Below, piece by piece: positions 1-46,792 of a DNA stretch of 64,000 bases. Both the position numbers and the translations under genes were made by a program. The number at the start of each line of letters is the position of its first letter. The first letter of the stretch is position 1. Under the pieces are notes generated by a model. It had not been told where the DNA came from and ran no database searches. It saw only the letters and a list, made by a program, of their open reading frames with translations. The stretch is taken from positions 265,322-329,321 of the IMG/VR virus record IMGVR_UViG_3300021137_000001; one strand, written 5' to 3'.

Positions 1-713
1 ATTCTATGGTTAAGGGGATTAGCAACTTCGTCACGAAATACTTCAAAATGATGTTTGCCAACTGCTTTGTTAACTCCAGCATATACACCGCCTAGCGGAC
101 GATTTAAACTTTCAATACCGAACAGTTCGAAATCATTTTCATCTAATACAAATCTCGGTGCACTTAACCAACACATTAATTGACTGGGTCTACGCCACTC
201 TGGGGCATGAACAGCTTTACGCATGCTCAATATAAGAGATTCATATTCATGACATAATAAGTTTAATTGTCGAATATGCCATCGAACTCGGCTGTCTGCT
301 CGGTTATAAAATTCAGACATGCGGCCGCTAACTCCTTGTAAATCTTCAAAATATCTATGCAGATGATTCATCTTATCATGTACTACACCACCAATTTCTT
401 CAGTACCGTTGATTACTCCAGGAGATATAGTATTTTCCACAGTAAAATGATCGTTAATCTGATATCCAAGATTTGCTTGATTAATTGCCGCGATTGATAG
501 ATTAATTTGATTAGTTATATATTCTGCATTTCTGTCAGATTCAATAAATCCGTGAAAGCAATAATTTTTCTCAAGATGATAGTTTTGTTTGATTAATGTA
601 TTAAGCGCCGATAGCCATTTACGACTAAGAGAGTTATCATATACATCAATGTATATAGTAAGTATGTCGTTAGTTTTGTTATTTTTTAGATCAATTTCAA
701 TTTGATCAAGCAA
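1..713 (-). CDS. Hypothetical protein, partial (3' end lies beyond window start); continuation of the radical SAM operon
   Basis: Not in the ORF track. TTG at 713-711 overlaps the stop of 706..1995. Frame read by hand: MLDQIEIDLKNNKTNDILTIYIDVYDNSLSRKWLSALN...HRYFEDLQG...LNLLCHEYES...; open to the window edge. Confidence 0.75.
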   Translation of the reverse strand, partial: MLDQIEIDLKNNKTNDILTIYIDVYDNSLSRKWLSALNTLIKQNYHLEKNYCFHGFIESDRNAEYITNQINLSIAAINQANLGYQINDHFTVENTISPGVINGTEEIGGVVHDKMNHLHRYFEDLQGVSGRMSEFYNRADSRVRWHIRQLNLLCHEYESLILSMRKAVHAPEWRRPSQLMCWLSAPRFVLDENDFELFGIESLNRPLGGVYAGVNKAVGKHHFEVFRDEVANPLNHR

Positions 714-1995
714 TGTTTTTATACCACTCATATACTGCTGGTCTCTCTTTTAATATGTCTGCTAGTGTAAGCGTATCATTACGTATACTTTCTAATTGTA
801 ACACACGTTGCTTACCTTTGTCAAGCTCTTTCTTATATGTATCAGGCCATTGCTCGTCAAACGTTGGTCGTGATTTTAACTGTACAAGTACATCTTGCAT
901 AGCGCCGGAAGTCTGTGGAATTAGTTCGTCTAACCATGGATGTAGTAAGTCGCGTGGTAGAGCAAGGGGACTAAGGATAATGTCGGGGCTAAAGCTGAAA
1001 ACAACTTTAGCCAAGATGTCTACATTTTCTTCTGAAGCAAGGTTGGTAATGTTGATGATTTCGAACATACCGGGCAATGTGAGAGTGAAGTCGATTCGCA
1101 TTTGTCGACGATGAGTAGCTGTTTTAATTCCTTCACGGAAGTTTTCAAGCCATTGATTATAATCAAGTCCTGTTCTAATATATTCTCCAATTGCTCCCGT
1201 TCCATCAAGGCTGGCACAGATTTGCCAGTCGCGTAACCCAGATAAAATATCGCTGAAGAGATTGATACCACGATAGTTGACGCGGCTAAGATTAGTATTG
1301 TACCTTGCGTAAGCATGCTTGCCATCTCCTAAATCAATAATGCGTTTCATATAACGCCAATGTTGTTCGTACATTAGTGGTTCACCACCAACCCAATATA
1401 CTTCTTCAACTTGATGATTCTCGACTGCTTGAGCAAACTCCTGTTCTATTTGACTATCTTGAAATGCTGTGATCTCTTGTTTTACTTCTGGTTTCATCCA
1501 ATTATTCTTTGGGTTGTTCCAATTAATCATATTATGTTGTCGTTGTTCAGTTTCCCAAGCACTCGATAACATATCTCCGCACATGCGACACTTAAAATTA
1601 CATAAGTTACTAAATCTATAGTCCCAACTTACAGGGCGCATAGTTGTGTAACCTGTTGTATCTGTTGTCTCTTGTACTTGTAAATACTTATTACCAAACA
1701 TAGAATCAAAATAACTACGGTAAACTGATGTGTTCAATAGCTTGTCATTACACACTTCGCATTCAGGAAGTGTTTCCCCTGCCATCATACGCCGACGTAC
1801 TGACTTCATATGCTCACTGTTCCAGTGTTCATCTAAGGTAATTGGAATGTATTTGCCTGTGCCAGCTCGAGTATCGATATACTGTTCAAAGTTTTGCGCA
1901 GGCTCGCGACTAGCACAGCATATACGTCTTTCAGTTTGTGGTGAAAGATATGTGTGACACCATGCGGCAAGGCAAAGTGTACTAGGCTTCAACAT
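706..1995 (-). CDS. Radical SAM enzyme with N-terminal twitch (Fe-S) domain
   Basis: CxxxCxxC (SNLCNFKCRMC), GGEP, YNTN and ASLDG motifs; N-terminal Cys set CLAAW...ICC...CEVC. Confidence 0.9.
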   Translation of the reverse strand: MLKPSTLCLAAWCHTYLSPQTERRICCASREPAQNFEQYIDTRAGTGKYIPITLDEHWNSEHMKSVRRRMMAGETLPECEVCNDKLLNTSVYRSYFDSMFGNKYLQVQETTDTTGYTTMRPVSWDYRFSNLCNFKCRMCGDMLSSAWETEQRQHNMINWNNPKNNWMKPEVKQEITAFQDSQIEQEFAQAVENHQVEEVYWVGGEPLMYEQHWRYMKRIIDLGDGKHAYARYNTNLSRVNYRGINLFSDILSGLRDWQICASLDGTGAIGEYIRTGLDYNQWLENFREGIKTATHRRQMRIDFTLTLPGMFEIINITNLASEENVDILAKVVFSFSPDIILSPLALPRDLLHPWLDELIPQTSGAMQDVLVQLKSRPTFDEQWPDTYKKELDKGKQRVLQLESIRNDTLTLADILKERPAVYEWYKNIA

Positions 1996-3181
1996 AACCC
2001 ATTGCTAATGCAATTTCCTTATGTGTTGTTAGCATCGATTCTTTTCTAAATTCATCAGTCTGTTGCATTTTACGTAAGAATTCTGTGCCATCACTGCCGT
2101 TGCCATTTTCGATAAACTTAATGATACGCATAATTTCTGCTTTGTGTTTACTGCTAAACTCATGTGTGCGCAATCTATTAATAACAAGTTCTTTTGCGGC
2201 TGGTGTCATTCTAGCAATACACATGTGCCACGGGTCGTGTAACATATTAAAGTAAACATTATCAAATGTTTGTTGCGCAATCCAATCACATATCTCGGGT
2301 AAGTAATAAACGTTTTGTATGTTTATTGTTGTACATAAATGTATAGTTAATTTCTTACTTCTTAGTTCAATAAACTTAGCTATGTTTGCTTGTACTTCGT
2401 CCCACTTAGCAAGATAGCGTTCATATTCAAAACGTGCGCCCATATTGTCTATACTAAATGCAATCTCAACGTGCTTAAATTCTTTCCACACATCGGCAAA
2501 ATCTGGGAAGACAGTGCCGTTTGTATTGTAATGTATTTCAATATCTTTACTATAACCATGCTCTACTGCATAACGCAATAGTTCAAAGTGTTCTTTAATT
2601 AAGAATGGCTCACCTCCCGTAAATTCAAAGTATTTAATGTTTGGTAGCAGTGCTCGTAAGTTATCCCAAAATTGTGGATTCTCACGCGGCCATGCGCCTT
2701 GCTTAAGAAATGTATATGCTAAATGGTCTTTCTTTTTAACTTCTGGTAAGTATGCCATTTCTTCTTGTGCCCACGGACTGCTACTCCAGCTACCGCATAT
2801 ACGACATTTAAGATTACAAATATTGCCGAGCTTTAAGTCAATGAACCAAAGTTGATCAGGGTTAGTATTACTAAAGTCAACTTTATCATAGTATTCTTTA
2901 AGACGTATGCGACTGTTAATGCGCTTGCTTACTCTGCCTGCCGCCTCTTCGTCCCAACATCTTTTGCATGTTGCCGGTTGCTTACCAAGTAAAAACTCTT
3001 GACGCAGGTCTTGCATATATCCACTTTGATATATTTGTGTAAGTGTGTGTTTGTTTAAATCGTACTTGACACCAGCTGCATCTGTTATCTCATCTATAGC
3101 AAGACAACAAGGTCGACTTGTACCAATTGGACTAGTTTCAATACTAATCCAAGGTAGCATGCATATTTTACTTGACAACAT
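1982..3181 (-). CDS. Radical SAM enzyme with N-terminal twitch domain
   Basis: CMLPW...PCC...CKRCW twitch-type cysteines; GNICNLKCRIC; TGGEPF; YNTNG; FSID. Confidence 0.92.
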   Translation of the reverse strand: MLSSKICMLPWISIETSPIGTSRPCCLAIDEITDAAGVKYDLNKHTLTQIYQSGYMQDLRQEFLLGKQPATCKRCWDEEAAGRVSKRINSRIRLKEYYDKVDFSNTNPDQLWFIDLKLGNICNLKCRICGSWSSSPWAQEEMAYLPEVKKKDHLAYTFLKQGAWPRENPQFWDNLRALLPNIKYFEFTGGEPFLIKEHFELLRYAVEHGYSKDIEIHYNTNGTVFPDFADVWKEFKHVEIAFSIDNMGARFEYERYLAKWDEVQANIAKFIELRSKKLTIHLCTTINIQNVYYLPEICDWIAQQTFDNVYFNMLHDPWHMCIARMTPAAKELVINRLRTHEFSSKHKAEIMRIIKFIENGNGSDGTEFLRKMQQTDEFRKESMLTTHKEIALAMGYVEA

Positions 3182-4481
3182 ATGATTTTAAATCTATAAA
3201 CTCAGGGAATACCTGTCGGAATCTTTCGTTACGATAAATGTCCATTTGTTCGTTTACTCGAAAAAATTCACTCAATAATTCACTCTTATCATCGGCATCC
3301 ATAAAGTGCAATAAACTCTGATATCCATTGGTGGCACGTTTTAAATAATCAGAAGGTGCTAACCATTGTATATGTTCTTCTATTTTTTCCCTAGCCCGAT
3401 CTTTATATACCTTAGGCAATACATCAATACGGTCGCGTTCGGATCCTTGTAGAATATTAATGTTCCAATCTTGTGGTTTAATAAATCCACGCTCAACCCA
3501 ATCTCTATGGAAATCTGTGATGTGTAATATATTATAGATACTAACAGTAGGACTTATATAAAAGTCTACATTAGGACATTTTTCAATCATGCGGCGGCGA
3601 TTATTTTCAATGTCTGCCCACTTAGTACCTTTGCGTATATATTCGCCTCGTTCACCCATACCATCTAAACTAGCACCTACACTAACACTATCAAATAACT
3701 GCCAATAATCTAATACATCTTCATTTTTAAGATTAAGTCTGCTAAAGTTTGTGTTGTATACTAATTTAACATCAAAGCGTTCTTGACGCACTAACTCTTT
3801 TAATACTTTATAATGTTCTTCCATGATAAGCGGTTCGCCACCGGCAAAGTAAATCTGATCAAGATACGGAATGTGTTGTAGCATTTGCACCCACATGTCG
3901 TTTTCTGTACGACCTGCAAACATAATTTGTGGGTGATTACGTGGACCAAACAGTTTAGTTTCTTCTGTGTACCAACTACTGCTAAACAAACTTCCACACG
4001 TTCTGCAACTAAAGTTACATAGATTACTAAAGCGTACATCATAGTAACGTAGTTTAAAGTCCTCTACTGTGCCGTTTGCTAGTGTGTTATCAACTAATGC
4101 AATGTGTTGCCCAAAGTTTTTATTTGAACTGTTGCGCATACTCATAAAGCCACTTGCTTCTTGCTCGTAGCACTTAGTACATTCTTTACACGATTTTTCT
4201 GTAAGCATGTTTGTACGCATAGTTTTATATGCATCATCATTCCATACTTCTTCCATTGTGTTTTGTTTGAAGTTACCAATTGGGTAATCCATTTCGCCGA
4301 GACAACAAGGATATGCTCGTCCGTCTGGGAAGCCATGCATGTGTATCCACGGGATTATGCAAAATGTATCACTATCAACTAATCTCGCAAGTTGATCTTT
4401 ACGTAAATCATCTTCGCTTATATAAACTGGCTTACGTGTATGATAGTTATGATTCTTATAATATTCTGTTTCTTTTGTCAA
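3168..4481 (-). CDS. Radical SAM enzyme with N-terminal twitch domain
   Basis: CIIPW...YPCC...GNFKQNTMEEVWN...CTKCY; SNLCNFSCRTC; AGGEPL. Confidence 0.92.
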   Translation of the reverse strand: MTKETEYYKNHNYHTRKPVYISEDDLRKDQLARLVDSDTFCIIPWIHMHGFPDGRAYPCCLGEMDYPIGNFKQNTMEEVWNDDAYKTMRTNMLTEKSCKECTKCYEQEASGFMSMRNSSNKNFGQHIALVDNTLANGTVEDFKLRYYDVRFSNLCNFSCRTCGSLFSSSWYTEETKLFGPRNHPQIMFAGRTENDMWVQMLQHIPYLDQIYFAGGEPLIMEEHYKVLKELVRQERFDVKLVYNTNFSRLNLKNEDVLDYWQLFDSVSVGASLDGMGERGEYIRKGTKWADIENNRRRMIEKCPNVDFYISPTVSIYNILHITDFHRDWVERGFIKPQDWNINILQGSERDRIDVLPKVYKDRAREKIEEHIQWLAPSDYLKRATNGYQSLLHFMDADDKSELLSEFFRVNEQMDIYRNERFRQVFPEFIDLKSYVVK

Positions 4482-5812
4482 AGTGTGTTATACCAGTTAG
4501 TTAATTGTGTAAACGTGTATTTAAAGTCTTTACCTCGGCGTTGGTCGTATTGCTGATAAAAATTCTTAAAGTCTTGTAATAAGTTGTTGTCAACTGTTGT
4601 ATCTTGTTGTAAGTAATCAATCAAACGTTTAATATGTTCAAGTTCATGCTCGTGTAATGCACTATTCTTACTATTGTTAACTAAAAATTCACTAAGCTCT
4701 TTACTATATATTGCACGTAGCTCAGCTGGTAGTATCATCGGACTTTGAAAACTAGGGAAGCGCAGTATGTTTAATGTAAATGACAATGCTTCGCGGCCAT
4801 ACTTCTCTTTAAGCTTCATCATGTTGTATAAAAATTCACTAAGGCTCGGCAAGCATAATGCGTTGATAGTACACATGACATGTATGCTACGCACTTTTTT
4901 ACTGTTAAGTAAGAATATTAAATTGCCAACCCATTGTTTCCATTCTAGTCCATCACGTATATACTCTGCATGTGTGCCCATTGACTCATTGCTAGTGTAG
5001 ATATCAAGTTCAATACCCTGTGTGCTATCGAGCAAGCGTTCAAGTATATCACGCTTAAAGCCAAGATTACTATTAATAGCAAGACGTGTAGTACTCGCGC
5101 CTTTGTGTGCTTTAAACCAATCGATTAAGCGCCACGTGTTATCTGACATTAGTGGTTCGCCGCCTGTAATGCGTAGCTCTTTTAATGTTTTATGTAGGTC
5201 TGTTTCCCACCATTTGAAGAATGCTTCCACATACGGATTAACTTCATTGAGTTTAAATAATTGACTGCTACTATGCTCGTGAGTAAAATGATTTCTGCCG
5301 TCTGAAACCAAATTGGTGTATGCCCCGTTCTGATGTATGTCTCTAACCCAACTAGTGCTAAAAGCAGGGTTGCAGTAAGAACAAGCAAACTGGCAAGTTC
5401 TGTCAAAGGCAATTTCCAAAGTTTGTAAGTTAACATCTTCGTTTGCAGGTAAATTGTATGCATCATCTAAGTCCTTATCGTTATAAATTACAGTCTTATA
5501 TACACGGTCACTAACTGCATCTGTGCTCATGTCTTCTATCTTCCAGCAGTAATCACAGCCCGCAGGTCGTTCTCCTGCTTGCATTTGTCTACGCTGTTCT
5601 TTCTTTTGCGGAGTATTATGTATTGCGCTTGGATTTGTTTTAATTGCTTCTATATCAATTGCATGAGGCAATGGGTGATGACAACTTGTAGTTTGTCCAC
5701 TTCCTAACCATATAGTAGCGTTGTACCATTTTGCCGCGCAGAAGCTAGCGGACTTAATGTCAATCACTCTACGCTTATATGCTAAATCTGTTTCGTTATT
5801 AATTTTCGGCAT
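4478..5812 (-). CDS. Radical SAM enzyme with N-terminal twitch domain (SCHHP subtype)
   Basis: CAAKW...SCHHP...CDYCW; DRTCQFACSYC; TGGEPL. Confidence 0.9.
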   Translation of the reverse strand: MPKINNETDLAYKRRVIDIKSASFCAAKWYNATIWLGSGQTTSCHHPLPHAIDIEAIKTNPSAIHNTPQKKEQRRQMQAGERPAGCDYCWKIEDMSTDAVSDRVYKTVIYNDKDLDDAYNLPANEDVNLQTLEIAFDRTCQFACSYCNPAFSTSWVRDIHQNGAYTNLVSDGRNHFTHEHSSSQLFKLNEVNPYVEAFFKWWETDLHKTLKELRITGGEPLMSDNTWRLIDWFKAHKGASTTRLAINSNLGFKRDILERLLDSTQGIELDIYTSNESMGTHAEYIRDGLEWKQWVGNLIFLLNSKKVRSIHVMCTINALCLPSLSEFLYNMMKLKEKYGREALSFTLNILRFPSFQSPMILPAELRAIYSKELSEFLVNNSKNSALHEHELEHIKRLIDYLQQDTTVDNNLLQDFKNFYQQYDQRRGKDFKYTFTQLTNWYNTL

Positions 5813-7184
5813 GGTATTTACACTCCTGCCAAAAATCTTTCATTTGTGGGAATGTGTTCAAAAAGTTTAATCCTCTACGTTTATCGTATTCATTAAAAAA
5901 TCTATAGAAGTCTGCACGTTGCGTTTTTAAATAGGTCGCATCTAAGTCAGCTCCTTGTTTCATCCAATCAAGATTACGTTCCATACGTTGTATCTCATAG
6001 TCTTTAAAGCCCTCAAAGTTATCAGCACGTTCGTCTGCTTGGTTTGTTCGCATAAATGTAACAACATCTTCTAATATGCGAACATAACTTGCTGGCAGTA
6101 TTTGTAAACTTTGATATGTTGGGCTACGTAACAGTGGCGTGTCAAACCATACACGTTGATACGTTGAGCTAAACTTTTTACGCATATTTAGAATTGATTC
6201 TAACAAGCGTTGCAGGCCAAGTATGTTTAAATTGTTCATTGTAATAATAAATGTTAAACTATTGCGATATGGAATATCCGTTAGGTATCGTTGAACATAC
6301 GACCCACATCTATTCCAGTCTAATCCATCCCGTATATATTCAGCATGATCGGCAATGCCCGTATCTAAACTAACATACTGCATAAAGTGTTCAATGCGCT
6401 CGCCTTCGCATAGTTGTTTAACTTTATCTAGATACTTATTAAACAACGCGGGTTCAACACTAAAGTTACTTGTAACATCAACGTGCAAATCACTTTTCGG
6501 CAAAGCAAGTATGTAATCAAACACACGATGCGTATTCTTATCCATAAGCGGTTCGCCACCAGTCATTCTAAAGTGTTTTAGTTTAGGATATAGCTCAGGC
6601 CACCAGGCCCAGAATGCATCAACATAGGGGTTAGCTTCACGTACTGGGATTGGCTTACGTCGACCTTGAAAGTGCTCAGGTGCATTGTGCGGAGTACTTG
6701 TTGGGTATGCACCCCAACGATCAATATCTTTGCCCCACTCTGTTGAATACTGTGGACTGCAATATGAACAAGCTAAGTTACAGCCATGACTGAAGTTTAC
6801 TTCAACATAACTTGGCACAACATCTTGGTCCCATGGTGCATTTACTATCGCTTCATAGTGTTCAGCCGCCCATGGTTCACCAGAACGATAGTGTCTGTCG
6901 CTTAGTTGCTTGTTATCTTCTGCACTCCAACAGTAACTACATTCTGCTGGGCGTGTTTGCTCTAGCATAAGTTTACGTTGCTGTTTCTTGTAGTCAGTAT
7001 TGTGTAGCGCACCTGGATTGAATAACAATGGCGCACTATCAATCTCGTGCAACGGAGGGTGATAACAACTGTTAGTCATGCCAGTTGTTAAATGCAAACT
7101 TACTTGTTGCCACTTAGCCAAGCAGAGTGCAGGTCCTAACTTGTCCTTCATTTCTTCTGCAGCTGACATAAAATTGCTACTCAC
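5799..7184 (-). CDS. Radical SAM enzyme with N-terminal twitch domain (SCYHP subtype)
   Basis: CLAKW...SCYHP...CSYCW; SHGCNLACSYC; TGGEPL. Confidence 0.9.
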   Translation of the reverse strand: MSSNFMSAAEEMKDKLGPALCLAKWQQVSLHLTTGMTNSCYHPPLHEIDSAPLLFNPGALHNTDYKKQQRKLMLEQTRPAECSYCWSAEDNKQLSDRHYRSGEPWAAEHYEAIVNAPWDQDVVPSYVEVNFSHGCNLACSYCSPQYSTEWGKDIDRWGAYPTSTPHNAPEHFQGRRKPIPVREANPYVDAFWAWWPELYPKLKHFRMTGGEPLMDKNTHRVFDYILALPKSDLHVDVTSNFSVEPALFNKYLDKVKQLCEGERIEHFMQYVSLDTGIADHAEYIRDGLDWNRCGSYVQRYLTDIPYRNSLTFIITMNNLNILGLQRLLESILNMRKKFSSTYQRVWFDTPLLRSPTYQSLQILPASYVRILEDVVTFMRTNQADERADNFEGFKDYEIQRMERNLDWMKQGADLDATYLKTQRADFYRFFNEYDKRRGLNFLNTFPQMKDFWQECKYHAEN

Positions 7185-8070
7185 GTGTCATTATGCCTGT
7201 GTTCTTAAATACGCTTTTGTAATGATGCTTAAAGAATCTGCTTTGGTCTGCATTTAATTGTGGTGCAGGTAGACCCAATCGTAAATTTAACGAAAGCGAC
7301 ATTTCCCCGCATTCCTCGACTAAGTTGTACACTTTATGTTGATGCCATATTCTGTTTAGTGCATCAAAGTCTTGCACTTCTCTATAATCCCAATCTGTAA
7401 TCATTGTCATGTATGTACCAAGTTTAGCACCATACATTGCCCAGTCGCCATTCTCTACATCCATACCTACATTGTGCCATATGCTTAAATGATCATAGTT
7501 GCGATTGTGTACCCGTTTCTCAAACTCTTGCAGGCTTGGCTTAGTACCTCGAGCTAAACACATTTTAACACCTTCCCTAAAGCCTGCTCGCCACGCTTGA
7601 TACGGAGTTGCGTTTGGATATGTTGTGCTGTAACAATCGTTCATACTCCAATAGCGTGGATCAAAACAAAACTCAACAGCGGTATCATCGTCACCGTTAC
7701 TTGCTTCGTGAGTACGCATATTGTTGACAAAGTCTTTAGTCCAACAACTCATGCCGCCATTGCCGTACATTAGTCCGTTTATTTCGTTACGTGCTTTCCA
7801 GCGAAATACCACGTCACTGTTTGTGTTATCAAGTTGTAATTGTAAATTGAAAAATGCAGGATCGGGTATATTATCGCCATCGATAAGAATGAATCTATCT
7901 GTATCCGATATCGCTGCGGCGGCTTTGTGCGCAGCGTCACTACCTTTGACTCCATCTACACGTTTGGCCCACGGTACCATATTTTGTATCTTAATCCAAT
8001 TTTGCTCTTTGTTTGGCTCATCGTATGTTAGCATCACACAATCTAAATCTGCAATATCAATTAGTGGCAT
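7177..8070 (-). CDS. Putative GT-A fold glycosyltransferase / nucleotide-diphospho-sugar transferase
   Basis: N-terminal strand LTYDEP, GVKGSDAAHKAAA helix, hydrophobic strand plus DxD (FILIDGD). Start placed at MPLID (track gives 8079). Confidence 0.65.
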   Translation of the reverse strand: MPLIDIADLDCVMLTYDEPNKEQNWIKIQNMVPWAKRVDGVKGSDAAHKAAAAISDTDRFILIDGDNIPDPAFFNLQLQLDNTNSDVVFRWKARNEINGLMYGNGGMSCWTKDFVNNMRTHEASNGDDDTAVEFCFDPRYWSMNDCYSTTYPNATPYQAWRAGFREGVKMCLARGTKPSLQEFEKRVHNRNYDHLSIWHNVGMDVENGDWAMYGAKLGTYMTMITDWDYREVQDFDALNRIWHQHKVYNLVEECGEMSLSLNLRLGLPAPQLNADQSRFFKHHYKSVFKNTGIMTRE

Positions 8071-8407
8071 AGTATTCAATCTCGTTATAAGTATCAGTTG
8101 GTTCTAATATTAATCCTGCGTGTTTCTTTACTACAGCATAACCCTCAGAGCTACTGATTAATTGTACATGATAACCGGGATTGTTGTCAATCTTTTTTAG
8201 TTTACCATCTTTAATTGTGTAGCAGAAGTAGTTGTCATATTCATCTTTGCTAACAACAATATACGTTGTATCGGATGGGTGATTTATCATTGTACACATC
8301 GTAATATGCCCATCTTCATAGTGTATTCTGTATTCTTTGACTTCTTCCACAGTGGGTTGCAACATTGCAAATGCTTCAGCTAATGTATCATTTGAGTTCA
8401 TCTTCAT
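8057..8407 (-). CDS. Hypothetical protein within the glycosyltransferase cluster
   Basis: 116-aa ORF overlapping both neighbours on the same strand; no motif recognised. Confidence 0.7.
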   Translation of the reverse strand: MKMNSNDTLAEAFAMLQPTVEEVKEYRIHYEDGHITMCTMINHPSDTTYIVVSKDEYDNYFCYTIKDGKLKKIDNNPGYHVQLISSSEGYAVVKKHAGLILEPTDTYNEIEYYATN

Positions 8408-9242
8408 ATTCCTTAACTAAAGCATCTGTTATCCAACTCTTTTCATGATAGTGAATGGGATGATATTGATTTGTATTTGCTATACGTATCATCGGTAAAT
8501 CTGTTTCGCACATTACTAATTCGGGCCATGGCGTACTTGTCCACTTGTTAATAGCAGGTTTCATATGTACAAAGTTAATAAAATCTGCGCTGGGCAATGT
8601 ACAATTTTCTATGCCCAAGATCTTTGCCGCTAGTGCATACACTACATCAGTAGTCGGATTATTATCGCGACAGTTAAGTAATACCTTATCGCGAATGTGC
8701 GCCCAGTTTCTAAATAGTTGTTCTGCTAGTGTAAAAAATTGGGTTGCTTCGCGTGTGTATCTAAAATACATTAGTCCATTGTAGGTGTCGGGCAATTCAT
8801 TATCGTCAAACAACTTTCTGTATTCACGTGATCGACTTAACTCTTGTTTATAATCTCTATAGCCAGTGCTTAATACAATGTTCTTTAATCTAAAAGCGGT
8901 CCACCAGTGTGCAATACTTCTAGTGAATACAATATCACTTTCAAGTTTAATTGTTTCTTTGAATGGTGTGAGATAAAATGCTTGCCATTCGTTACTTAAC
9001 TTCCAAGCTTCGTCTACGGCTAAGTCATTCTCAATTGTAATTACATAATCAAACACTCGACGATGCTGTTCGGTTACTCGCGCTAGTGTATTCTTATCAA
9101 CTGCAACTGCGTATAAGCTATTGGGCATTGTAAGTTTAATGCTCATTGCCTGCACGTAAGCAAGACGCAAATAATCGACATCTGCGGTGTTTTGCGCAAT
9201 TGTCATAAAGCCTTGCTGTGCTTGATGGGGTGTTATTCGCAT
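8388..9242 (-). CDS. Putative glycosyltransferase (GT8/mannosyltransferase-like GT-A fold)
   Basis: GFMTIA...YLRLAYVQAMSIK...TPFKETIKLESDIVF (DxD variant ESD)...NGLMYF...TTDVVYALA...FVHMK. Confidence 0.7.
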   Translation of the reverse strand: MRITPHQAQQGFMTIAQNTADVDYLRLAYVQAMSIKLTMPNSLYAVAVDKNTLARVTEQHRRVFDYVITIENDLAVDEAWKLSNEWQAFYLTPFKETIKLESDIVFTRSIAHWWTAFRLKNIVLSTGYRDYKQELSRSREYRKLFDDNELPDTYNGLMYFRYTREATQFFTLAEQLFRNWAHIRDKVLLNCRDNNPTTDVVYALAAKILGIENCTLPSADFINFVHMKPAINKWTSTPWPELVMCETDLPMIRIANTNQYHPIHYHEKSWITDALVKEYEDELK

Positions 9243-9994
9243 AAGGTATCTACCAATTTATCAAAGTCGGCACTTAATAAGTAATCTTTATCCATTATGT
9301 GTACGTTTTGCAGGGCAATGACATGTGCTATATTTTCTTCACGTATAATCATCTTTTCACCTGTTATTTCGATGTTTTTGACTAGTTTATCTATGGTTAG
9401 CATAGTAAAAGGGATACTTTGTGATAGGTCAGTAGTGTAACCACTAATAATATTGTTAGCAATTGCAAATGCGTAATCATTGCGAAAGTTGCGTTCTCTA
9501 ATGTGATACAACTTTTGATAATAAGCATAGTTACGTTCAATTCTGCCTACTAAGTCAAACAATGCTTTCGTTTTATCAGTGCGCTTAAATGTTATAGCAG
9601 TTGCCCACACATAATCTAAACTCATTTGCCCCATGTTGCCCGACATTGACATTGTAGGACTTTGATTGTGATGCATTAACTTGTAATCAATTGTAGTGTC
9701 AAGTATGTTTAATAAACTCGTATCAAATTGTAAATAATCGCTATCAAGTAATATAGTTTCATCATACGGACTAAGTTCATACGCACGATATCTACCACCG
9801 TTCTTCCATTGTGTTCCACCTGCGTGACCTGTTCTAAAGTTTTTAGCAGATGTAACGCCAGTATCTGTTATAATAGTAGTTGGTAGATTTAATGTGTGCT
9901 CAATCAGTCGTGCGGCTTGCTCAGCGATTTTAATGTAATCAACTGTATCTGTGTTAACAGCAAATAATATTACGCCCTTAGACTTTTCTTGCAC
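9233..9994 (-). CDS. Putative glycosyltransferase (GT8-like GT-A fold), paralog-like to 8388..9242
   Basis: KGVILFA...YIKIA...SPYDETILLDSDYL (DxD)...RNDYAFAIA...VHIMDK. Confidence 0.7.
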   Translation of the reverse strand: MQEKSKGVILFAVNTDTVDYIKIAEQAARLIEHTLNLPTTIITDTGVTSAKNFRTGHAGGTQWKNGGRYRAYELSPYDETILLDSDYLQFDTSLLNILDTTIDYKLMHHNQSPTMSMSGNMGQMSLDYVWATAITFKRTDKTKALFDLVGRIERNYAYYQKLYHIRERNFRNDYAFAIANNIISGYTTDLSQSIPFTMLTIDKLVKNIEITGEKMIIREENIAHVIALQNVHIMDKDYLLSADFDKLVDTLCE

Positions 9995-10295
9995 GTTTAA
10001 GTTCTTCGTGTTGTATATGCCACAAGTTCATTGCCTGCTGATAGTGTTGTGTGCATATATCTAAAAATTCCGATCGTTGCACAAAGATTGGGTTCTCGTA
10101 CGTATCTTCTAAGTATAGCGCAACACTGGGCCATGTTGAGAGAAACGCAATAAGCTCTGGTGTTACCTTAAAGAGCCCATTGTTATATGGTACGTGCAGA
10201 TCTGTTTGCACTTTCTCTTTAAGTATACGTTTGTTTGTTTGATAATCCGTTGCTTGTTTAATTTGAGCAACTAGTTGATTGATTTCTGTTGTCAT
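9978..10295 (-). CDS. Hypothetical protein, first gene of the GT/radical SAM operon
   Basis: 105-aa ORF overlapping 9233..9994; ATG preceded by TAATTA-N5. Confidence 0.7.
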   Translation of the reverse strand: MTTEINQLVAQIKQATDYQTNKRILKEKVQTDLHVPYNNGLFKVTPELIAFLSTWPSVALYLEDTYENPIFVQRSEFLDICTQHYQQAMNLWHIQHEELKRARKV

Positions 10296-10311
10296 AATAG
10301 TAATTAGCCAT

Positions 10312-10341
10312 AAAAATAGGTAAGTGTTTATTCTTACCTAT
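10312..10341 (-). terminator. Intrinsic terminator
   Basis: Minus strand ATAGGTAAG-AATAAACA-CTTACCTAT-TTTT, 9-bp perfect stem downstream of 10374..11327. Confidence 0.75.
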
Positions 10342-10370
10342 AGTGTACTACATTTATACGAGTATGTCAA
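10342..10370 (-). promoter_or_regulatory. Sigma70-type promoter upstream of the GT/radical SAM operon
   Basis: Minus strand TTGACA-17 nt-TACACT. Confidence 0.65.
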
Positions 10371-10373
10371 CTA

Positions 10374-11327
10374 TTATGCAACTACCGGAGTGCCCCATTG
10401 AGATACCAAATATGTTGTTTCTGGGTAAACAATATCAACTCGATGATTAAGTGTTACACTTAACACTGCGTTAAGAGCATGAGTTGGTGCGTTTAAATAT
10501 AAGTTAAAAGAAACTACTGCACCTTTATCACCATGCGCCGATACATTTTGCGCACTTGATAGCATTTGAATTTGTGCGTAATCCGTAGTATATGCGGCAG
10601 TTGTACTTGTAACTTGTATAAGAGACACTGCGCCCGTTGTAAGTCCTTGATACCCAATTGTAGTCGAATTAGTATTAAGCGTACCCCCTGTGCCAGTACG
10701 TCCGCCATTTGATGCGTTACGGAATGCGGTCATACCACCGACATTAGTTACTAGTAATGTAGATACATCGACGCTACGTGCAGTAGCATTATTAGTCGAT
10801 GATATTATAACAAGATTCAATTGCCCGCCTGCATTAAAAAAGTAACGTGCAGCATCACCACTGGCAAATGTTACTGTTCTAGTGGCAAATACTGCGGCAT
10901 ACGCCACACCTGTTGCTGCCGAAATTACTGGGGAAAATGTAGCACCAGTAGTAGTTGCGCCTTGTGCAGTAAATGTTGAACTGTTGGTGTTAATTGTTGT
11001 AACTGCGGTATTTAATGCGGCGCTATATGTAGCGGTTGCGCCAGATGTAAGGGTTGGTACGGAGATAGCAGCGGCAGCCCCACTCTGATGTTGTACACAT
11101 ACATTAAGTGCTGTTAATAATCCGCTCCATTGTGTTGCTGTTACAATGCCTGCAGCCGATATAGTATTGAGATTAGTAACTACTTGCCCATAGCCAACTG
11201 CTCCGGAACCAACACCGAGTACGTAGGCAATATTAACTGGCGAGGTAGTATAAGTGCCCTGTGTACCACCCCATGCTAATGCATTAAAATCGGCTGCTTG
11301 AATTGTTCCAGTTGATGCGTATGACAT
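10374..11327 (-). CDS. Virion structural protein (Thr/Ala/Ser/Gly-rich, fibre/baseplate-associated), paralog A
   Basis: Very low charge, beta-rich composition, ARYFFNAGG motif, at the end of the tail module; clear paralog of 11450..12406. Confidence 0.7.
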   Translation of the reverse strand: MSYASTGTIQAADFNALAWGGTQGTYTTSPVNIAYVLGVGSGAVGYGQVVTNLNTISAAGIVTATQWSGLLTALNVCVQHQSGAAAAISVPTLTSGATATYSAALNTAVTTINTNSSTFTAQGATTTGATFSPVISAATGVAYAAVFATRTVTFASGDAARYFFNAGGQLNLVIISSTNNATARSVDVSTLLVTNVGGMTAFRNASNGGRTGTGGTLNTNSTTIGYQGLTTGAVSLIQVTSTTAAYTTDYAQIQMLSSAQNVSAHGDKGAVVSFNLYLNAPTHALNAVLSVTLNHRVDIVYPETTYLVSQWGTPVVA

Positions 11328-11384: not shown

Positions 11385-11454
11385 CATAAAAATAGGTAAG
11401 TGTTTATTCTTACCTATAGTGTACTACATTTATATTAGTATGTCAACTATTATG
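11385..11454. repeat. 70-bp direct repeat, copy 2
   Basis: 68/70 identical to 10309..10378; contains hairpin plus T-tract 11388-11417 and TTGACA-17-TACACT at 11446-11418 (minus). Confidence 0.95.
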
Positions 11455-12406
11455 TAATTGACACTGTACCCCATGAGTTAGTTGTTAAGTAGGTTGATTC
11501 TGGATAAACAACATCAATCTGGAAGTTTAACGTAGCATTAATTGTGTCGTCCCATGCATGATCGGCAACTACATAGCCCAATCTAAAAGCAACACCATAT
11601 CCAGCTGCACCGTTAGTAGTGTCGGGATTGAAGCCATAAACTTGTAAATATGAATAATTGGCAGTATATGCCGCAGTAGTGTCAGTTACTTGTACTAGTG
11701 TATTTGCCACGCCTTGTACATTATTTCTATATCCATATGCTGTATTATTTGTATTCTGTGTAAGGCCAGTACCGCTGCGCCCAGCATTTGTTGTTTGACG
11801 AAATTGTGTTATTCCGCCGACTGCATTAATTACACGTACAAAACTTTGGCTTGACAAAGATCCATTAAGATCAGTTGCAGAAACGCGAACATTTAAATAG
11901 CCGCCTGCATTAAAGAAGTAACGTGCAGCTTGTGCACCTGATGAAAAAGTCGCAAAGTGATCAGTATATGAGTTTACCCCTGTTGTACTACCGGCACCTA
12001 TGTTTGTAGTTGCAAGCGAACCAGTAGTTGTAGCACCTTGCGCTGTATATAATGCAGAATTTGTGTTAATTGTTGTTACAGCCGTTGCCACTGTACTAAA
12101 GTAAGTAATTTTATTACCAGCAGTAATAGTCGGGCTCACTGTTAATTGTGCGCCTGCGCCACTTTGATGACCCAACGCAGCATTTAATGTTGTTAACAAC
12201 CCGCTCCACTGTACCGCAGTAACAGTACCTGCTGCTGCAACTGTGTTAATGGCAGTAACAGACTGGCCGTAGCCCACTGCGCCAGAACCAACTCCCATAA
12301 CATAAGCAATGTTAGTTGGGCTTGCTGTGTAAGTACCTTGTGTACCACCCCATGCTAAGTTATTATAATCCGTTGCTTGTATTAAGCCAGCTGATGCGTA
12401 TGACAT
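11450..12406 (-). CDS. Virion structural protein, paralog B
   Basis: Shares MSYAS..IQA.D.N.LAWGGTQGTYT.SP.NIAYV.GVGSGAVGYGQ, ARYFFNAGG and VYPE.TYL..WGT with 10374..11327. Confidence 0.7.
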   Translation of the reverse strand: MSYASAGLIQATDYNNLAWGGTQGTYTASPTNIAYVMGVGSGAVGYGQSVTAINTVAAAGTVTAVQWSGLLTTLNAALGHQSGAGAQLTVSPTITAGNKITYFSTVATAVTTINTNSALYTAQGATTTGSLATTNIGAGSTTGVNSYTDHFATFSSGAQAARYFFNAGGYLNVRVSATDLNGSLSSQSFVRVINAVGGITQFRQTTNAGRSGTGLTQNTNNTAYGYRNNVQGVANTLVQVTDTTAAYTANYSYLQVYGFNPDTTNGAAGYGVAFRLGYVVADHAWDDTINATLNFQIDVVYPESTYLTTNSWGTVSIT

Positions 12407-12417
12407 ATTTGTTATCC

Positions 12418-13908
12418 TTAACTATTTAATTTAACTATTGCTTCAACAGTGCCTTCGCCCATTGATGTTTTATTTTCTAACGCACGACCAATAACATTAA
12501 ATGCTGTCATTTCGCTACGTGTTGCAGCTCGAGCTAAACCACGACCTGCACTTACTAACCTATCACCCTTTTTAACAGTACCAATTACACGAACTGGCAC
12601 ACGACCATTGACTGCAACTGGTGGGTGAGTAACATCGTTACCTGCTCCACCGTTCATTAAGAAGCCTGCTTTCATACTTATCACTCCAAACACTGCCTCG
12701 CTTAAATCCTGAACCACGGCAGTGATTTCTTTAAGTCCGCCAAGTTCAACAACTGTTCCTGGTGTATATGATGCGTCTGATTCAAAGCGTTCCGCTAAGT
12801 CAGCGTATAATGAAGTAGTCGATGTACCAATTAAGTTACCGTAGAATGTAGAAGCAATTGCGTTAACTGCATATACGTTAGCAAATTTAGTACCAGTTGC
12901 ACCAATGTTAATTGTATTTGGGCTGTTTGGTAAGATTGTGTTTGATGCAATAGTAATACCTTGATTTAATGTATAACCAGTTACTGTTAAGTTACCAGTA
13001 ACACTTGCTGTACCTTGTGTAATAAAATTACCCGGTAATGTAACTGCTGAAGTAGTACCGTTAATACCAATTGCTTTAGTACTAACCCCACCCATCTTAA
13101 CCCATAAGTTCAAGTCGCCGTTATTGAAACTGTTAGTTAAACTAACTGCTCCGCCAGTAGAAACAATAGTTAAATCACTACTTACTACCAATCCACCATT
13201 TACTGAAAGTTGATAGTTAGTACTTGTATTTTGATCATTACGTAAGTACGAACCGCCAGTAACACCATTGACTGTTAGTGCGTTACTTGCATCGCCTGTA
13301 AATTGTGCGCCAGTAAGTGTACTTGAACTAATTAAGTTCATACCAGGTTTAACTGTTGTAAATCCTGCAATTGATGTTTGTGGAGTAAATGTACTATCTT
13401 TACTTAGAATAGCAATTACGCTATTTGAAATATAAAATTTAACAACAACGTGACTAATTGAACTACTATCTAAAATAGTTTCAACTACTGCACCACTTGT
13501 TCCCGATGTTGCAGTGTATGATGGGCCAATTGTTACCCACGCACTACCGCTCCATACTTTAAGTTGAGCATTATTAGTGTCCCACCATAAGTCACCAGTC
13601 ACTGGGCTAGTCGGCGAACTGCTAGAAGCAGCAGAACTACTAATTGGTTTCCATCCTGCAGAACCACCAGCATAAACTTTCAATACATTATTAGTACTAT
13701 CGTACCAAAGTTGACCAGTTAATGCAGCACTTGGTGCAGTTGTATTAGAAAAGTTTTCAAGCAACTTAATATAGTTTTCATTTAAGAAAATACCATAACC
13801 TGCATAGTTTTTACCGATTAAAGTTAAACTAGTTGTTGTGGAATTGACTGTTCCGTCTGCTATAGTTGCGAGTGTAACACCTGCTGTTGTAGTTATTGTA
13901 TATGACAT
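12418..13908 (-). CDS. Tail fibre/baseplate-attached protein with C-terminal intramolecular chaperone (peptidase G2/S74-like) domain
   Basis: N-terminal LIGKNYAGYG..NENYIKLLENF domain, repeated G(Q/D)LW(Y/W)D..LKV, C-terminal YADLAERF...PGTVV...GVIS...GRVPVRV. Confidence 0.65.
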   Translation of the reverse strand: MSYTITTTAGVTLATIADGTVNSTTTSLTLIGKNYAGYGIFLNENYIKLLENFSNTTAPSAALTGQLWYDSTNNVLKVYAGGSAGWKPISSSAASSSSPTSPVTGDLWWDTNNAQLKVWSGSAWVTIGPSYTATSGTSGAVVETILDSSSISHVVVKFYISNSVIAILSKDSTFTPQTSIAGFTTVKPGMNLISSSTLTGAQFTGDASNALTVNGVTGGSYLRNDQNTSTNYQLSVNGGLVVSSDLTIVSTGGAVSLTNSFNNGDLNLWVKMGGVSTKAIGINGTTSAVTLPGNFITQGTASVTGNLTVTGYTLNQGITIASNTILPNSPNTINIGATGTKFANVYAVNAIASTFYGNLIGTSTTSLYADLAERFESDASYTPGTVVELGGLKEITAVVQDLSEAVFGVISMKAGFLMNGGAGNDVTHPPVAVNGRVPVRVIGTVKKGDRLVSAGRGLARAATRSEMTAFNVIGRALENKTSMGEGTVEAIVKLNS

Positions 13909-13940
13909 TATTATTACCTATTATATGTTATTTATCTGCA

Positions 13941-46682: not shown

Positions 46683-46792
46683 AAACACATAACTCACACA
46701 GACACCAAGTCGCTCTCATAGAAACAAATTCCAACTCCGTAATAAAGTAGTAAATGTTTTAACCGCAGGTGGAACAAGTGATAAATAACTGT

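Follow-up and report, generated by a model that had tools for sequence, protein, structure and literature searches.

Gene content of the island

We analysed a 64,000-nt window of the genome of an uncultured 329-kb jumbo phage (IMGVR_UViG_3300021137_000001). Positions 1-10295 of the window hold ten complete minus-strand genes and the start of an eleventh, each overlapping the next by 4-26 nt. Five of these genes, namely, rs461 (5799-7184), rs444 (4478-5812), rs437 (3168-4481), rs399 (1982-3181) and rs429 (706-1995), encode proteins of 399-461 aa which match the N-terminal-twitch radical SAM (rSAM) family, NCBIfam NF033640 (N_Twi_rSAM), with scores of 294.1, 299, 406.5, 337.6 and 285.5 bits, respectively, far above the cutoff of 170 bits. 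All five proteins contain the CX3CX2C and GGEP motifs and four aligned N-terminal cysteines. The Pfam SPASM profile matches the N-terminus in three of the five proteins, with two of the matches exceeding the Pfam cutoff; for instance, SPASM is found at residues 41-104 of rs437 (E=4.8e-12), the best match to the family model, and at residues 7-76 of rs399, where it is followed by Radical_SAM at residues 118-300. Pairwise identity among the five proteins is only 19-33%, indicating that these are old paralogues rather than recent duplicates. rs461 and rs444 (33% identical) form a subfamily, and rs437 has bacterial relatives at 33-43% identity.

Three further genes encode candidate glycosyltransferases (GT), although the original prediction of three GT-A-like proteins needs nuance. 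The products of g284 (8388-9242) and g253 (9233-9994) are paralogues (hhalign probability of 99.1%), and the g284 profile hits glycogenin-1, a GT8 enzyme, at E=7e-4, with its invariant ExD aligned on the DxD; g253 carries a DSD motif. By contrast, g300 (7177-8079) belongs to an unrelated, GT2-like family with an invariant DGD, comprising more than 8000 clusters at 90% identity and 1391 clusters at 50% identity, all unnamed in the case of the former. The AlphaFold model of g300 retrieves almost only GT-A-type folds, that is, glycosyltransferases and sugar nucleotidyltransferases, but weakly, with Foldseek E-values of 0.004 or worse against annotated glycosyltransferases, and none of the three proteins reaches a Pfam cutoff. 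The remaining genes encode conserved proteins of unknown function. The small proteins u105 (9978-10295), the first gene of the island, and u116 (8057-8407) have orthologues in nearly all and in most of the relatives surveyed, respectively, but yielded no family hit, nor, in the case of u116, a PDB hit. The truncated gene at 1-731 is the 5' two-thirds of e363, which encodes a 363-aa protein; the full gene was identified on the same contig (L002, a stretch of that contig, 13751-14842) and is present after the last rSAM gene in nearly all relatives. Its AF2 model (pLDDT 82.5, pTM 0.82) has no PDB fold match, and no Pfam or NCBIfam hit was obtained.

The island lies behind a fibre module on the same strand. 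The genes t317 (10374-11327) and t318 (11450-12406) encode paralogous (54% identical), low-charge Ala/Gly/Ser/Thr-rich proteins (A+G+S+T of 49-51%, K+R of 2-3%), which are always directly upstream of u105 and carry a GYGQ motif invariant in 24 of 24 family members, but have no family or PDB hit. They are preceded by t496 and t465 (12418-15338), encoding tail-fibre-like proteins with an N-terminal match to the virion structural protein phrog_14394; t496 also has a C-terminal Peptidase_G2 intramolecular-chaperone domain. The location directly behind the tail module, as originally described, is therefore true in position, but the island is a demarcated unit, because a terminator-like hairpin and a late-promoter-like TATAAATG separate the last fibre-like gene from the first island gene. 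Both are part of a 90-nt minus-strand element (10309-10398) which overlaps the 3' end of t317, includes the TATAAATG box, a 9-bp hairpin and a T-run, and is repeated at 11385-11474, so that t317 and the island are preceded by the same element. The two copies are 89% identical, compared to 72-76% for the flanking coding repeats. Furthermore, all 5 occurrences of TATAAATA in the window lie upstream of same-strand gene starts, and a gp55-like late sigma factor is encoded at 40240-41139.

Extent and conservation of the island

As predicted, the operon continues past the window edge. On the same contig, e363 is followed by genes for two SGNH/DUF6071-like proteins, an O-carbamoyltransferase, a P-loop kinase, a dCMP deaminase and e442, a DxD-less paralogue of g300, and the block ends against convergent genes for a DegT/DnrJ/EryC1 sugar aminotransferase (E=6e-84) and an SDR protein with hits to the NDP-sugar epimerase and GDP-mannose dehydratase families. 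The carbamoyltransferase hits PF02543 and PF16861 at E=8e-36 and 6e-48, and its best PDB relatives are NovN, GdmN and TobZ. Thymidylate synthase (ThyA) and DHFR genes lie within 5 kb.

The same gene order recurs in all of about 80 loci fetched from IMG/VR with g300 and about 80 fetched with e442, with 4-7 rSAM genes per island, far beyond chance. The orthologues of rs429, for instance, are 66-92% identical in these relatives, and 100% of 347 distinct rSAM orthologues retain CX3CX2C and GGEP, consistent with active enzymes. A lack of co-occurrence of rSAM and GT genes in relatives had been put forward in advance as an outcome that would count against the predicted system; instead, the two always co-occur. 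Thus, the observation behind the original prediction holds and extends beyond the window. A mini-version of the island with a single rSAM gene is present in the cultured Ralstonia phage RsoM2USA, in which ORF349 is 33% identical to both rs444 and rs461 (E=7e-86 for the latter, the core type and the only one kept in this phage), g300 is 42% identical, and ORF352, ORF353 and ORF354 are 33%, 29% and 35% identical to g284, g253 and u105, respectively. The fibre-then-island synteny survives in RsoM2USA, where the SDR gene lies among virion genes, including ORF356, which was confirmed in virions by mass spectrometry (PMC8504454).

Bacterial homologues of the island proteins

We also examined the bacterial contexts of g300 and the rSAM family. 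In bacteria, the g300 domain (36-40% identity, E=7e-54 and 1e-47) is fused to GT-B enzymes. In 4 of 4 bacterial loci long enough to judge, the fusion lies beside a Peptidase_C39-ABC exporter, and in 5 loci it lies beside small ORFs with classical double-glycine leaders, whose cores all contain a PYG-type motif. One of these glycocin-like clusters also holds a bona fide N_Twi_rSAM (339.9 bits). However, the two families co-occur in only one of the four bacterial clusters, and no g300 hit was found in the roughly 70 other bacterial rSAM loci. The latter are heterogeneous. One N-twitch rSAM lies within a polysaccharide cluster on a Methylomagnum plasmid, with GT39, GT2, GT4, UbiA, AsnB and an ABC transporter, and GT4, GT2, PhyH, UbiA and AsnB recur among 145 neighbours of bacterial members. 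By contrast, the rSAM arrays of Bacteriovoracaceae lack adjacent glycosyltransferases, whereas an Elusimicrobia MAG encodes fusions of TPR protein-binding repeats to N-twitch rSAMs.

A putative glycoconjugate pathway

The original interpretation, namely, a multi-step pathway that builds and radically tailors a glycan, most plausibly on the adjacent virion proteins, is partly supported. The sugar chemistry is well supported by the GT-like, carbamoyltransferase, SGNH-like, DegT and SDR genes, all conserved together in relatives, and the claims that the rSAM family has no assigned function and that no RiPP-like precursor is evident also hold: within the island, all genes overlap and no double-glycine leader is present. 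The preferred target gained independent but indirect support from the bacterial contexts of g300, together with the fibre-gene synteny and the shared late-promoter-like element, but is not proven.

In the most likely scenario, to which we assign a probability of about 0.45, the island is self-contained, consists of soluble cytoplasmic enzymes, and builds and tailors a glycoconjugate. The SDR epimerase/dehydratase and the DegT aminotransferase would turn a host NDP-hexose into an NDP-amino/deoxy-sugar, and the GT-A-like enzymes (g300, the GT8-like pair g253/g284, and e442) would transfer sugars to an acceptor. Each of the five rSAM paralogues would then use a 5'-deoxyadenosyl radical, with an auxiliary N-terminal Fe-S cluster, to alter one position of the sugar or the glycan, possibly by oxidation, epimerisation, deoxygenation or C-C/C-methyl chemistry, in the way BtrN, DesII, NeoN or AprD4 act on sugars, and the carbamoyltransferase and the two SGNH-like proteins would finish the hydroxyl groups. 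What our analysis demonstrates is the gene content, family memberships, conservation, synteny and bacterial contexts of g300, whereas every enzymatic step, the order of the steps and the acceptor are inferred. The acceptor is most probably a phage protein, with t317/t318 (and t465/t496) being the prime candidates, in which case the product would be a glycosylated receptor-binding or surface structure. However, no glycosylation of any protein has been observed, nor was it shown that the rSAMs act on the glycan rather than on the acceptor; moreover, the argument for a protein acceptor rests on homology of a single domain, g300, a probable peptide/protein glycosyltransferase domain, to bacterial enzymes that are themselves uncharacterised, and the GT-A assignments are weak. 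The apparent absence of transmembrane segments from the island proteins speaks for a protein acceptor.

Alternative functions

The main rival, although less likely, is DNA hypermodification, whereby the GT-A-like enzymes, the carbamoyltransferase and the rSAMs would decorate a hydroxylated pyrimidine (5hmC, 5hmU or 5hoC) in phage DNA with a tailored sugar and/or carbamoyl group, to evade restriction and CRISPR. This is a stronger rival than originally implied, because a phage carbamoyltransferase of the same Pfam architecture makes 5-carbamoyloxymethylcytosine and, in modified contigs, co-occurs with dCMP deaminase and ThyS (PMC8670742), resembling the neighbourhood of kinase, dCMP deaminase, e442, ThyA and DHFR described here. 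Phage GT-A and GT-B enzymes put mono- to trisaccharides on 5hmC, and such clusters can sit next to structural genes (bioRxiv 10.1101/2023.12.21.572611), and phages encode NDP-sugar synthesis genes for DNA arabinosylation (PMC13326640). Late expression does not separate protein from DNA targets, because post-replicative DNA decoration is also late (PMC13326640), and no modification of phage DNA was shown here. However, the adjacent ThyS is canonical (361 bits), with Asn at E. coli position 177 (PFNIAS), His147 retained and DHFR next door, which is the signature of unmodified contigs (PMC8670742). No second ThyS-like enzyme or dioxygenase turned up among the genes annotated across the roughly 81 kb examined, although the annotation was partial and no dedicated search was made. 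Furthermore, the bacterial homologues of g300 sit in peptide rather than nucleic-acid clusters, and RsoM2USA keeps the GT and rSAM core among fibre genes, with no carbamoyltransferase homologue in the 25-kb region compared.

RiPP-like maturation, in which the rSAMs would act directly on amino-acid residues of a phage protein (a fibre protein, u105 or u116), forming cross-links, epimerising residues or methylating carbons, with sugars added separately by the glycosyltransferases, appears somewhat less likely still. In its favour, an N-twitch rSAM lies in a bacterial cluster with a double-glycine-leader peptide and a C39 exporter, TPR repeats are fused to N-twitch rSAMs in Elusimicrobia, SPASM/twitch enzymes are mostly peptide maturases, and the best PDB hit of the core is a RiPP cyclopropyl synthase. 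However, the island has no leader peptide, RRE domain or protease, all its genes overlap, and the rSAMs always travel with sugar-nucleotide and sugar-tailoring genes. In addition, other core hits, namely, viperin, BlsE and MoaA, act on nucleotides or sugar nucleosides, and some bacterial members lie in polysaccharide clusters.

Remodelling of the host LPS or capsule during infection, for example, to block superinfection, as glycosyltransferase clusters of jumbo cyanophages have been interpreted (PMC7824862), appears improbable. Although some bacterial N-twitch rSAMs sit in polysaccharide clusters, no membrane protein, flippase, polymerase or lipid-carrier enzyme is present among the island proteins checked (one of these, c332, reaches the 1.6 hydropathy threshold when rounded), the island is universally conserved at a fixed position next to fibre genes rather than sporadic and polymorphic, and its likely late expression in a lytic phage gives little time for surface turnover. 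Least likely is a diffusible aminoglycoside- or aminosugar-like metabolite acting, for example, on host translation or on competitors: the enzyme set echoes aminoglycoside pathways (twitch rSAM plus DegT aminotransferase, as in BtrN with BtrS; DesI with DesII; TobZ-type carbamoyltransferase; glycosyltransferases), and sugar-derived secondary metabolites have been predicted for carbamoyltransferase clusters in cyanophages (PMC7824862), but there is no cyclitol synthase, exporter or resistance gene, the g300 homologues point to peptide acceptors, and the island is tightly linked to fibre genes.

Relationship to known systems

Similar to the virion glycosylation systems of Che8/Corndog-type mycobacteriophages, Mimivirus and chloroviruses, glycosyltransferases are here encoded next to structural genes, and the virus carries its own sugar-nucleotide enzymes, a 4,6-dehydratase-type SDR and a DegT-type aminotransferase, as in Mimivirus viosamine synthesis. 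The Che8 glycosyltransferase Q855A2 and Ardmore gp87 are among the fold matches of g300. However, no rSAM enzymes are known in those systems, compared to five or more here together with a carbamoyltransferase and SGNH-like proteins, and the GT families differ, g300 having no Pfam family.

The phage DNA hypermodification clusters (T4 glucosyl-5hmC, the 5hmC-glycan clusters of Pyle et al., 5cmdC of Yang et al. and arabinosyl-5hoC of Lee et al.) similarly combine GT-A-like enzymes, an O-carbamoyltransferase, dCMP deaminase, ThyS and sugar-nucleotide genes in one neighbourhood, sometimes adjacent to structural genes. In the present locus, by contrast, ThyS is a canonical dUMP-type enzyme and no base hydroxylating or hydroxymethylating enzyme was found among the annotated genes, whereas no rSAM is reported in those sugar clusters ('radical' occurs 0 times in both papers examined).

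The juxtaposition of double-glycine-leader peptides and C39-ABC exporters with bacterial g300-domain proteins is the hallmark of glycocin clusters (sublancin SunS/SunT, glycocin F), and SunS appears among the weak fold hits of g300 (rank 44). However, the phage island has no leader peptide, protease or exporter, and the bacterial enzymes are GT-B-g300 fusions, not SunS-type GT2 enzymes.

Sugar-acting rSAM enzymes (BtrN, DesII, NeoN, AprD4 and BlsE) carry out radical chemistry on sugars or aminocyclitols and are often paired with DegT-family aminotransferases (BtrS, DesI), and BtrN and BlsE carry twitch/SPASM-type auxiliary clusters. In those enzymes, the auxiliary domain is C-terminal, whereas here it is N-terminal; similarity is limited to the rSAM core (E=5e-5 at best), and no more than one or two such enzymes occur per known pathway, against 4-7 here. 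Neither the g300 family nor NF033640 has a characterised member, and no paper in the library searched names the latter, but the bacterial NF033640 proteins share full-length matches far above cutoff and the same Cys pattern with the phage paralogues, and are found in polysaccharide clusters, tandem arrays, TPR fusions and one glycocin-like cluster.

Gene content of the island and its genomic setting

The 64-kb window comes from the 329,321-bp IMG/VR contig IMGVR_UViG_3300021137_000001, which represents a T4-core jumbo myovirus. Its baseplate wedge protein is about 35% identical to those of Atu_ph07 and the Rak2/GAP32 group, and the window also encodes a baseplate hub, a gp55-like late sigma factor, SbcCD, the portal and the major head protein. 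Positions 1-10295 hold ten complete minus-strand genes and the start of an eleventh, each overlapping the next by 4-26 nt. From 5′ to 3′, these are u105 (9978-10295), g253 (9233-9994), g284 (8388-9242), u116 (8057-8407), g300 (7177-8079), five genes for N-terminal-twitch radical SAM (rSAM) enzymes, namely, rs461 (5799-7184), rs444 (4478-5812), rs437 (3168-4481), rs399 (1982-3181) and rs429 (706-1995), and e363 (731 to beyond the edge). The original prediction, that five N-twitch rSAM enzymes and three glycosyltransferase-like proteins are encoded in one operon behind the tail module, is confirmed as an observation and enlarged.

Indeed, the co-directional block continues on the same contig (loci L002 and L169) with e363 (L002 13751-14842, of which the 5′ two-thirds lie at window 1-731), followed by the paralogous e232 and e212, of which e212 is DUF6071/GDSL-like, the O-carbamoyltransferase e498, whose best PDB relatives are NovN, GdmN and TobZ, the P-loop kinase e137, the dCMP deaminase e166 and e442, whose C-terminal half is homologous to g300 (hhalign 99.1%) but lacks the DxD motif. 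An HNH/NUMOD3 homing endonuclease (L002 16235-17026, minus strand) is inserted between e212 and the carbamoyltransferase gene, on the strand opposite to the block; it is absent from most relatives and is, thus, a recent mobile insertion in the island. Beyond e442, the strand flips, and the convergent genes encode a DegT/DnrJ/EryC1 sugar aminotransferase, an SDR NDP-sugar epimerase/dehydratase, an unknown 332-aa protein, thymidylate synthase (ThyS) and DHFR. In some relatives (L171, L179, L200 and L207), an additional, very divergent N-twitch rSAM (23-25% identical to rs437) is encoded on the convergent strand between the SDR and ThyA genes, in the position held by the 332-aa gene in this contig.

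N-twitch radical SAM enzymes

All five rSAM proteins belong to the NCBIfam family NF033640 (N_Twi_rSAM), with scores of 285.5 (rs429), 337.6 (rs399), 406.5 (rs437), 299.0 (rs444) and 294.1 (rs461) bits against the curated cutoff of 170 bits, and with each match covering about 390 of the 398 model positions. The CX3CX2C cluster motif and the GGEP motif are invariant in the five paralogs, and every one of 347 distinct orthologs keeps both catalytic motifs. Four aligned Cys residues (C41, C60, C101 and C104 of rs437) lie upstream of the core, placing the auxiliary domain N-terminal to it, although cluster binding was not assayed. Consistently, Pfam SPASM matches residues 8-104 in rs429, rs399 and rs437; the matches in rs399 and rs437 exceed the Pfam cutoff of 21.5 bits, whereas that in rs429 (15.4 bits) does not.

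The paralogs are only 19-33% identical to one another, whereas bacterial genes in a Bacteriovoracaceae array are 43-52% identical to individual phage paralogs. This rules out recent duplication as the source of the five genes, and the paralog set is therefore old and functionally differentiated. Among 38 distinct related loci, the number of rSAM genes between g300 and e363 is 4 in 5 loci, 5 in 17, 6 in 13 and 7 in 3. No solved structure belongs to the family: profile hits to the PDB cover only the rSAM core and include a RiPP cyclopropyl synthase, viperin, BlsE, GDGT-MAS and MoaA. No paper in the literature library searched names the family.

Bacterial members, for which genomes were scanned with an alignment of three paralogs, occur in mixed contexts. 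One lies inside a polysaccharide cluster on a Methylomagnum plasmid and, among 145 immediate neighbours of bacterial members, the recurrent families are PhyH, other rSAMs, TPR, GT4, GT2, UbiA, GDSL and AsnB, which supports in part a role in sugar chemistry. By contrast, Bacteriovoracaceae UBA6144 (L103, 6061-18057) and Oligoflexia (L100) contain tandem arrays of 4-8 N-twitch rSAM genes beside housekeeping genes (Obg, ABC transporter), with no adjacent glycosyltransferase. In the Elusimicrobia MAG MJ-2014_bin-0981 (L108, L117 and about 15 other contigs), there is a massive expansion, with dozens of 540-1130-aa proteins that fuse long TPR arrays to an N-twitch rSAM, 6-7 in tandem per contig, whose function is unknown. 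An exact-sequence look-up of a Reichenbachiella rSAM returned no match, probably due to the choice of the start codon.

Glycosyltransferase-like and unassigned proteins

None of the three glycosyltransferase-like proteins reaches a curated family cutoff, and g253 and g284 have no Pfam, NCBIfam or PHROG hit, so that membership in GT8 (glycogenin/LgtC-type retaining GT-A enzymes) is not supported at the level of Pfam Glyco_transf_8. The two proteins are paralogs (hhalign 99.1%), and a profile of g284 orthologs hits 19 glycogenin sequences at E=7e-4 to 4e-2 over the N-terminal 110 residues, with the invariant ESD aligned on DAD. The g253 profile alone finds nothing and, given that the fold of neither protein was modelled, the remote similarity leaves their assignment to GT8 undecided.

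The g300 protein is unrelated to this pair. It has a GT2-like N-terminal strand and a DxD motif, D67-G68-D69, that is invariant in 23 sequences, with a weak Pfam Glyco_tranf_2_3 hit falling exactly on residues 53-83. The AlphaFold model of g300 (pLDDT 77) retrieves almost only GT-A or nucleotidyl-sugar folds from the PDB (BcsA, ArnC, STIV A197, GtrB, ppGalNAcT), but with E of 0.014 or worse and TM of 0.37 or lower. From BFVD, it retrieves two strong uncharacterised phage proteins followed by annotated viral GT-A enzymes, including the mycobacteriophage Che8 glycosyltransferase, at E=4e-3 to 0.3. Whether g300 adopts the GT-A fold is not settled by matches this weak, and the designation 'GT-A-like' is, accordingly, probable but not proven. 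Nevertheless, association with glycosylation is evident from the fusion of the g300 domain to GT1/GT28-type GT-B domains in proteins of 715-809 aa.

Profile searches of the PDB with g300, g253, e363, u105, u116, e442 and the fibre-module protein t317 found nothing significant. The model of e363 is confident (pLDDT 82.5, pTM 0.82) but has no structural neighbour in the PDB (best E=0.6), so that this protein may represent a new fold or a family not yet solved. Large protein searches with g300 and rs437 were dominated by close, unnamed phage orthologs and gave no functional names.

Conservation across jumbo phages

Co-occurrence of rSAM and glycosyltransferase genes in related phages had been put forward in advance as a criterion on which the interpretation would stand or fall, and a survey of gene neighbourhoods bore it out. 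All of about 80 loci fetched with g300 show the same order, namely, t220, the tail-fibre-like t465/t496, the Ala/Gly/Ser/Thr-rich t317/t318, u105, g253, g284, u116, g300, the rSAM genes, e363 and onward, and all of about 80 loci fetched with e442 show the downstream half, including DegT and the SDR. At least 600 IMG/VR contigs carry g300 in such loci. It is the most conserved island protein among those compared (64-89% identity), with more than 8000 90%-identity clusters, all unnamed, and 1391 50%-identity clusters. The island is therefore a core trait of a large, uncultured clade of environmental, apparently largely freshwater, jumbo phages. Contigs binned as Legionellales, Polynucleobacter, Porticoccaceae, Flavobacterium, Rickettsiales and Haliscomenobacter MAGs (GTDB genome contigs, L092-L098) also carry this island with fibre genes, but these are probably misbinned jumbo-phage contigs and are unreliable as host evidence.

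Among GenBank phages, megablast with the island found no match, whereas tblastn found only the cultured Ralstonia phage RsoM2USA for g300 and three phages, weakly, for the rSAM. RsoM2USA encodes a mini-island annotated entirely as hypothetical, which includes ORF358 (SDR), ORF356 (a virion protein confirmed by mass spectrometry; PMC8504454), ORF355 (fibre-like), ORF354 (u105-like), ORF353 and ORF352 (GT8-like), ORF351, ORF350 (g300, 42% identical), ORF349 (a single rs461/rs444-type rSAM) and ORF348 (g300/e442-like).

Bacterial homologues of g300 and the proposed acceptor

To gain insight into the acceptor, we examined the genomic contexts of bacterial g300 homologues. In the library of 50%-identity representatives, a group of 715-809-aa proteins carries the g300 domain C-terminal to a GT1/GT28-type GT-B domain, with 36-40% identity to the phage protein (E=7e-54 and 1e-47). 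In four of four bacterial loci long enough to judge (L250/L251, from GCA_036320465.1; L252, from GCA_039187085.1; L254; and L255/L256), the fusion lies next to a Peptidase_C39-ABC exporter, with HlyD- or OEP-type partners. Furthermore, in five loci, small neighbouring ORFs have textbook double-glycine leaders, and all six core peptides contain a PYG-type motif. In L250, a bona fide N_Twi_rSAM (339.9 bits) is encoded between two fusions, and this locus also encodes a 229-aa DDD-motif protein (x229) that is not detectably related to either g284 or g300. Together with L249 and L253, these loci appear to represent an undescribed family of glycocin-like RiPP clusters, with a GT-B-g300 fusion, a C39-ABC exporter and precursors of 65-78 aa. 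In bacteria, therefore, the g300 domain, and once its rSAM partner, works in glycocin-like peptide maturation, which favours a protein acceptor in the phage. The precursors with double-glycine leaders and the C39 exporter of glycocin-type clusters are absent from the phage island and were found only in the bacterial loci that hold g300-domain fusions.

Several features of the phage locus are consistent with a protein acceptor but do not prove it. The island always follows the fibre module, even in the distant RsoM2USA, and t317/t318 are low-charge proteins with 49-51% Ala+Gly+Ser+Thr and an invariant GYGQ. No island protein has a membrane segment. In addition, t317 and the island are each preceded by the same 90-nt element (window 10309-10398 and 11385-11474), which begins in the last 25 nt of t317 and of t318 and extends past their stops. 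The two copies are 89% identical, compared to 72-76% for the duplicated coding sequence, and contain TTGACA-N17-TACACT, TATAAATG, a 9-bp hairpin and a T-run, so that the element could be a terminator, a late promoter with a 5′-UTR, or both. The possibility that TATAAATG plus the hairpin is a general promoter motif was rejected because the 12-mer is not enriched; only the 8-mer TATAAATA shows the upstream bias. All five occurrences of TATAAATA in the window (39552, 42914, 43522, 52181 and 58195, plus strand) lie 7-32 nt upstream of same-strand gene starts, including that of the portal gene, which fits T4-type late promoters read by the gp55-like sigma factor encoded at 40240-41139. A further potential link to fibres, through Peptidase_S74 neighbours seen in the census, was dropped, as an HMM of the t496 C-terminus hit only misbinned phage contigs and the proteins selected for Pfam analysis were housekeeping enzymes.

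Proposed function

The gene content says sugar chemistry, with an NDP-sugar dehydratase/epimerase, an aminotransferase, four GT-like proteins, a carbamoyltransferase and SGNH-like proteins. The original interpretation, a pathway that builds and radically tailors a glycan, is only partly supported, namely, in its sugar part. Whereas the composition of the island, its conservation and the bacterial neighbourhoods of g300 were observed directly, its biochemical role is inferred from these observations, and the target is unproven, although protein is now favoured. We estimate the probability that this is a glycoconjugate pathway at about 0.8, whereas the assignment of a phage protein as the acceptor, at about 0.45, is tentative. 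Attachment of a glycan to a virion protein was not measured here, and the study of RsoM2USA reports SDS-PAGE and LC-MS/MS identification only. Virus-encoded glycosylation is already known, but nothing like a battery of 4-7 N-twitch rSAMs has been described in any glycosylation or DNA-modification system that we could find.

If the product is a virion glycan, this would be the most elaborate phage-encoded glycosylation pathway known and the first to use radical SAM chemistry, with implications for host range, immune or defence recognition of virions, and glyco-engineering. If the product is on DNA, it would be a new class of base hypermodification. In either case, the island combines two protein families without a characterised member, N_Twi_rSAM and g300, with e363, and RsoM2USA offers a direct experimental route to the answer. 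A more specific reading, which is compatible with the data but unlikely, is that the island is a viral protein-maturation system of a new kind, in which g300-type transferases would glycosylate a tyrosine, or a neighbouring residue, in a (G/P)YG motif. This motif is invariant as GYGQ in the t317 fibre-module family and is present in PYG-type form in every core peptide of the related bacterial clusters. In this view, the N-twitch rSAM enzymes would then rewrite the attached sugar in situ, yielding a hypervariable, radically tailored glycan on the receptor-binding apparatus that would help set host range or shield the fibre. This would also provide the first function for both the N_Twi_rSAM and g300 families.

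Alternative explanations

The main alternative, DNA hypermodification, appears unlikely but cannot be dismissed. Phage carbamoyltransferases of this architecture make 5-carbamoyloxymethylcytosine and, in modified contigs, co-occur with ThyS and dCMP deaminase (PMC8670742). Similarly, phage GT-A and GT-B enzymes build glycans on 5hmC, sometimes next to structural genes (10.1101/2023.12.21.572611), and arabinosylated 5-hydroxycytosine needs phage sugar-nucleotide genes (PMC13326640). The island does have group-transfer enzymes next to nucleotide-metabolism genes, given that the carbamoyltransferase, P-loop kinase, dCMP deaminase and e442 genes are contiguous. However, the only ThyS found is canonical, with Asn177 rather than Asp177, His147, a score of 361 bits to the Pfam TS model and an adjacent DHFR gene. 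No enzyme that would create the hydroxylated base (an Asp177 ThyS homologue, 5hoC synthase or 5mYOX/TET) was seen among the genes annotated in the window and 17 kb beyond; this annotation of roughly 81 kb was partial, and about 250 kb of the contig was not examined. The lesser alternatives, namely, direct RiPP-like action of the rSAMs on protein, remodelling of host polysaccharides (PMC7824862) and a small-molecule product, are progressively less likely.

Other features of the window

A single minus-strand ORF of 4196 aa (16072-28662) lies between the fibre genes and the baseplate wedge gene and presumably encodes a giant structural or fibre protein, which was not analysed. A 63-nt direct-repeat family (39958-40020, 47132-47194 and 47234-47296) resides inside the ORFs at 39559-40236 and 46769-47467, where the encoded motif, although not compared with Pfam, looks like the NUMOD3 repeats of further homing endonucleases. 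Finally, a 279-aa ORF (54294-55133, plus strand) between the portal and major head genes contains seven copies of a 25-nt repeat encoding an acidic Glu/Asp-Phe-Gly-rich unit; it has no PHROG hit and may be a scaffold or prohead core protein.
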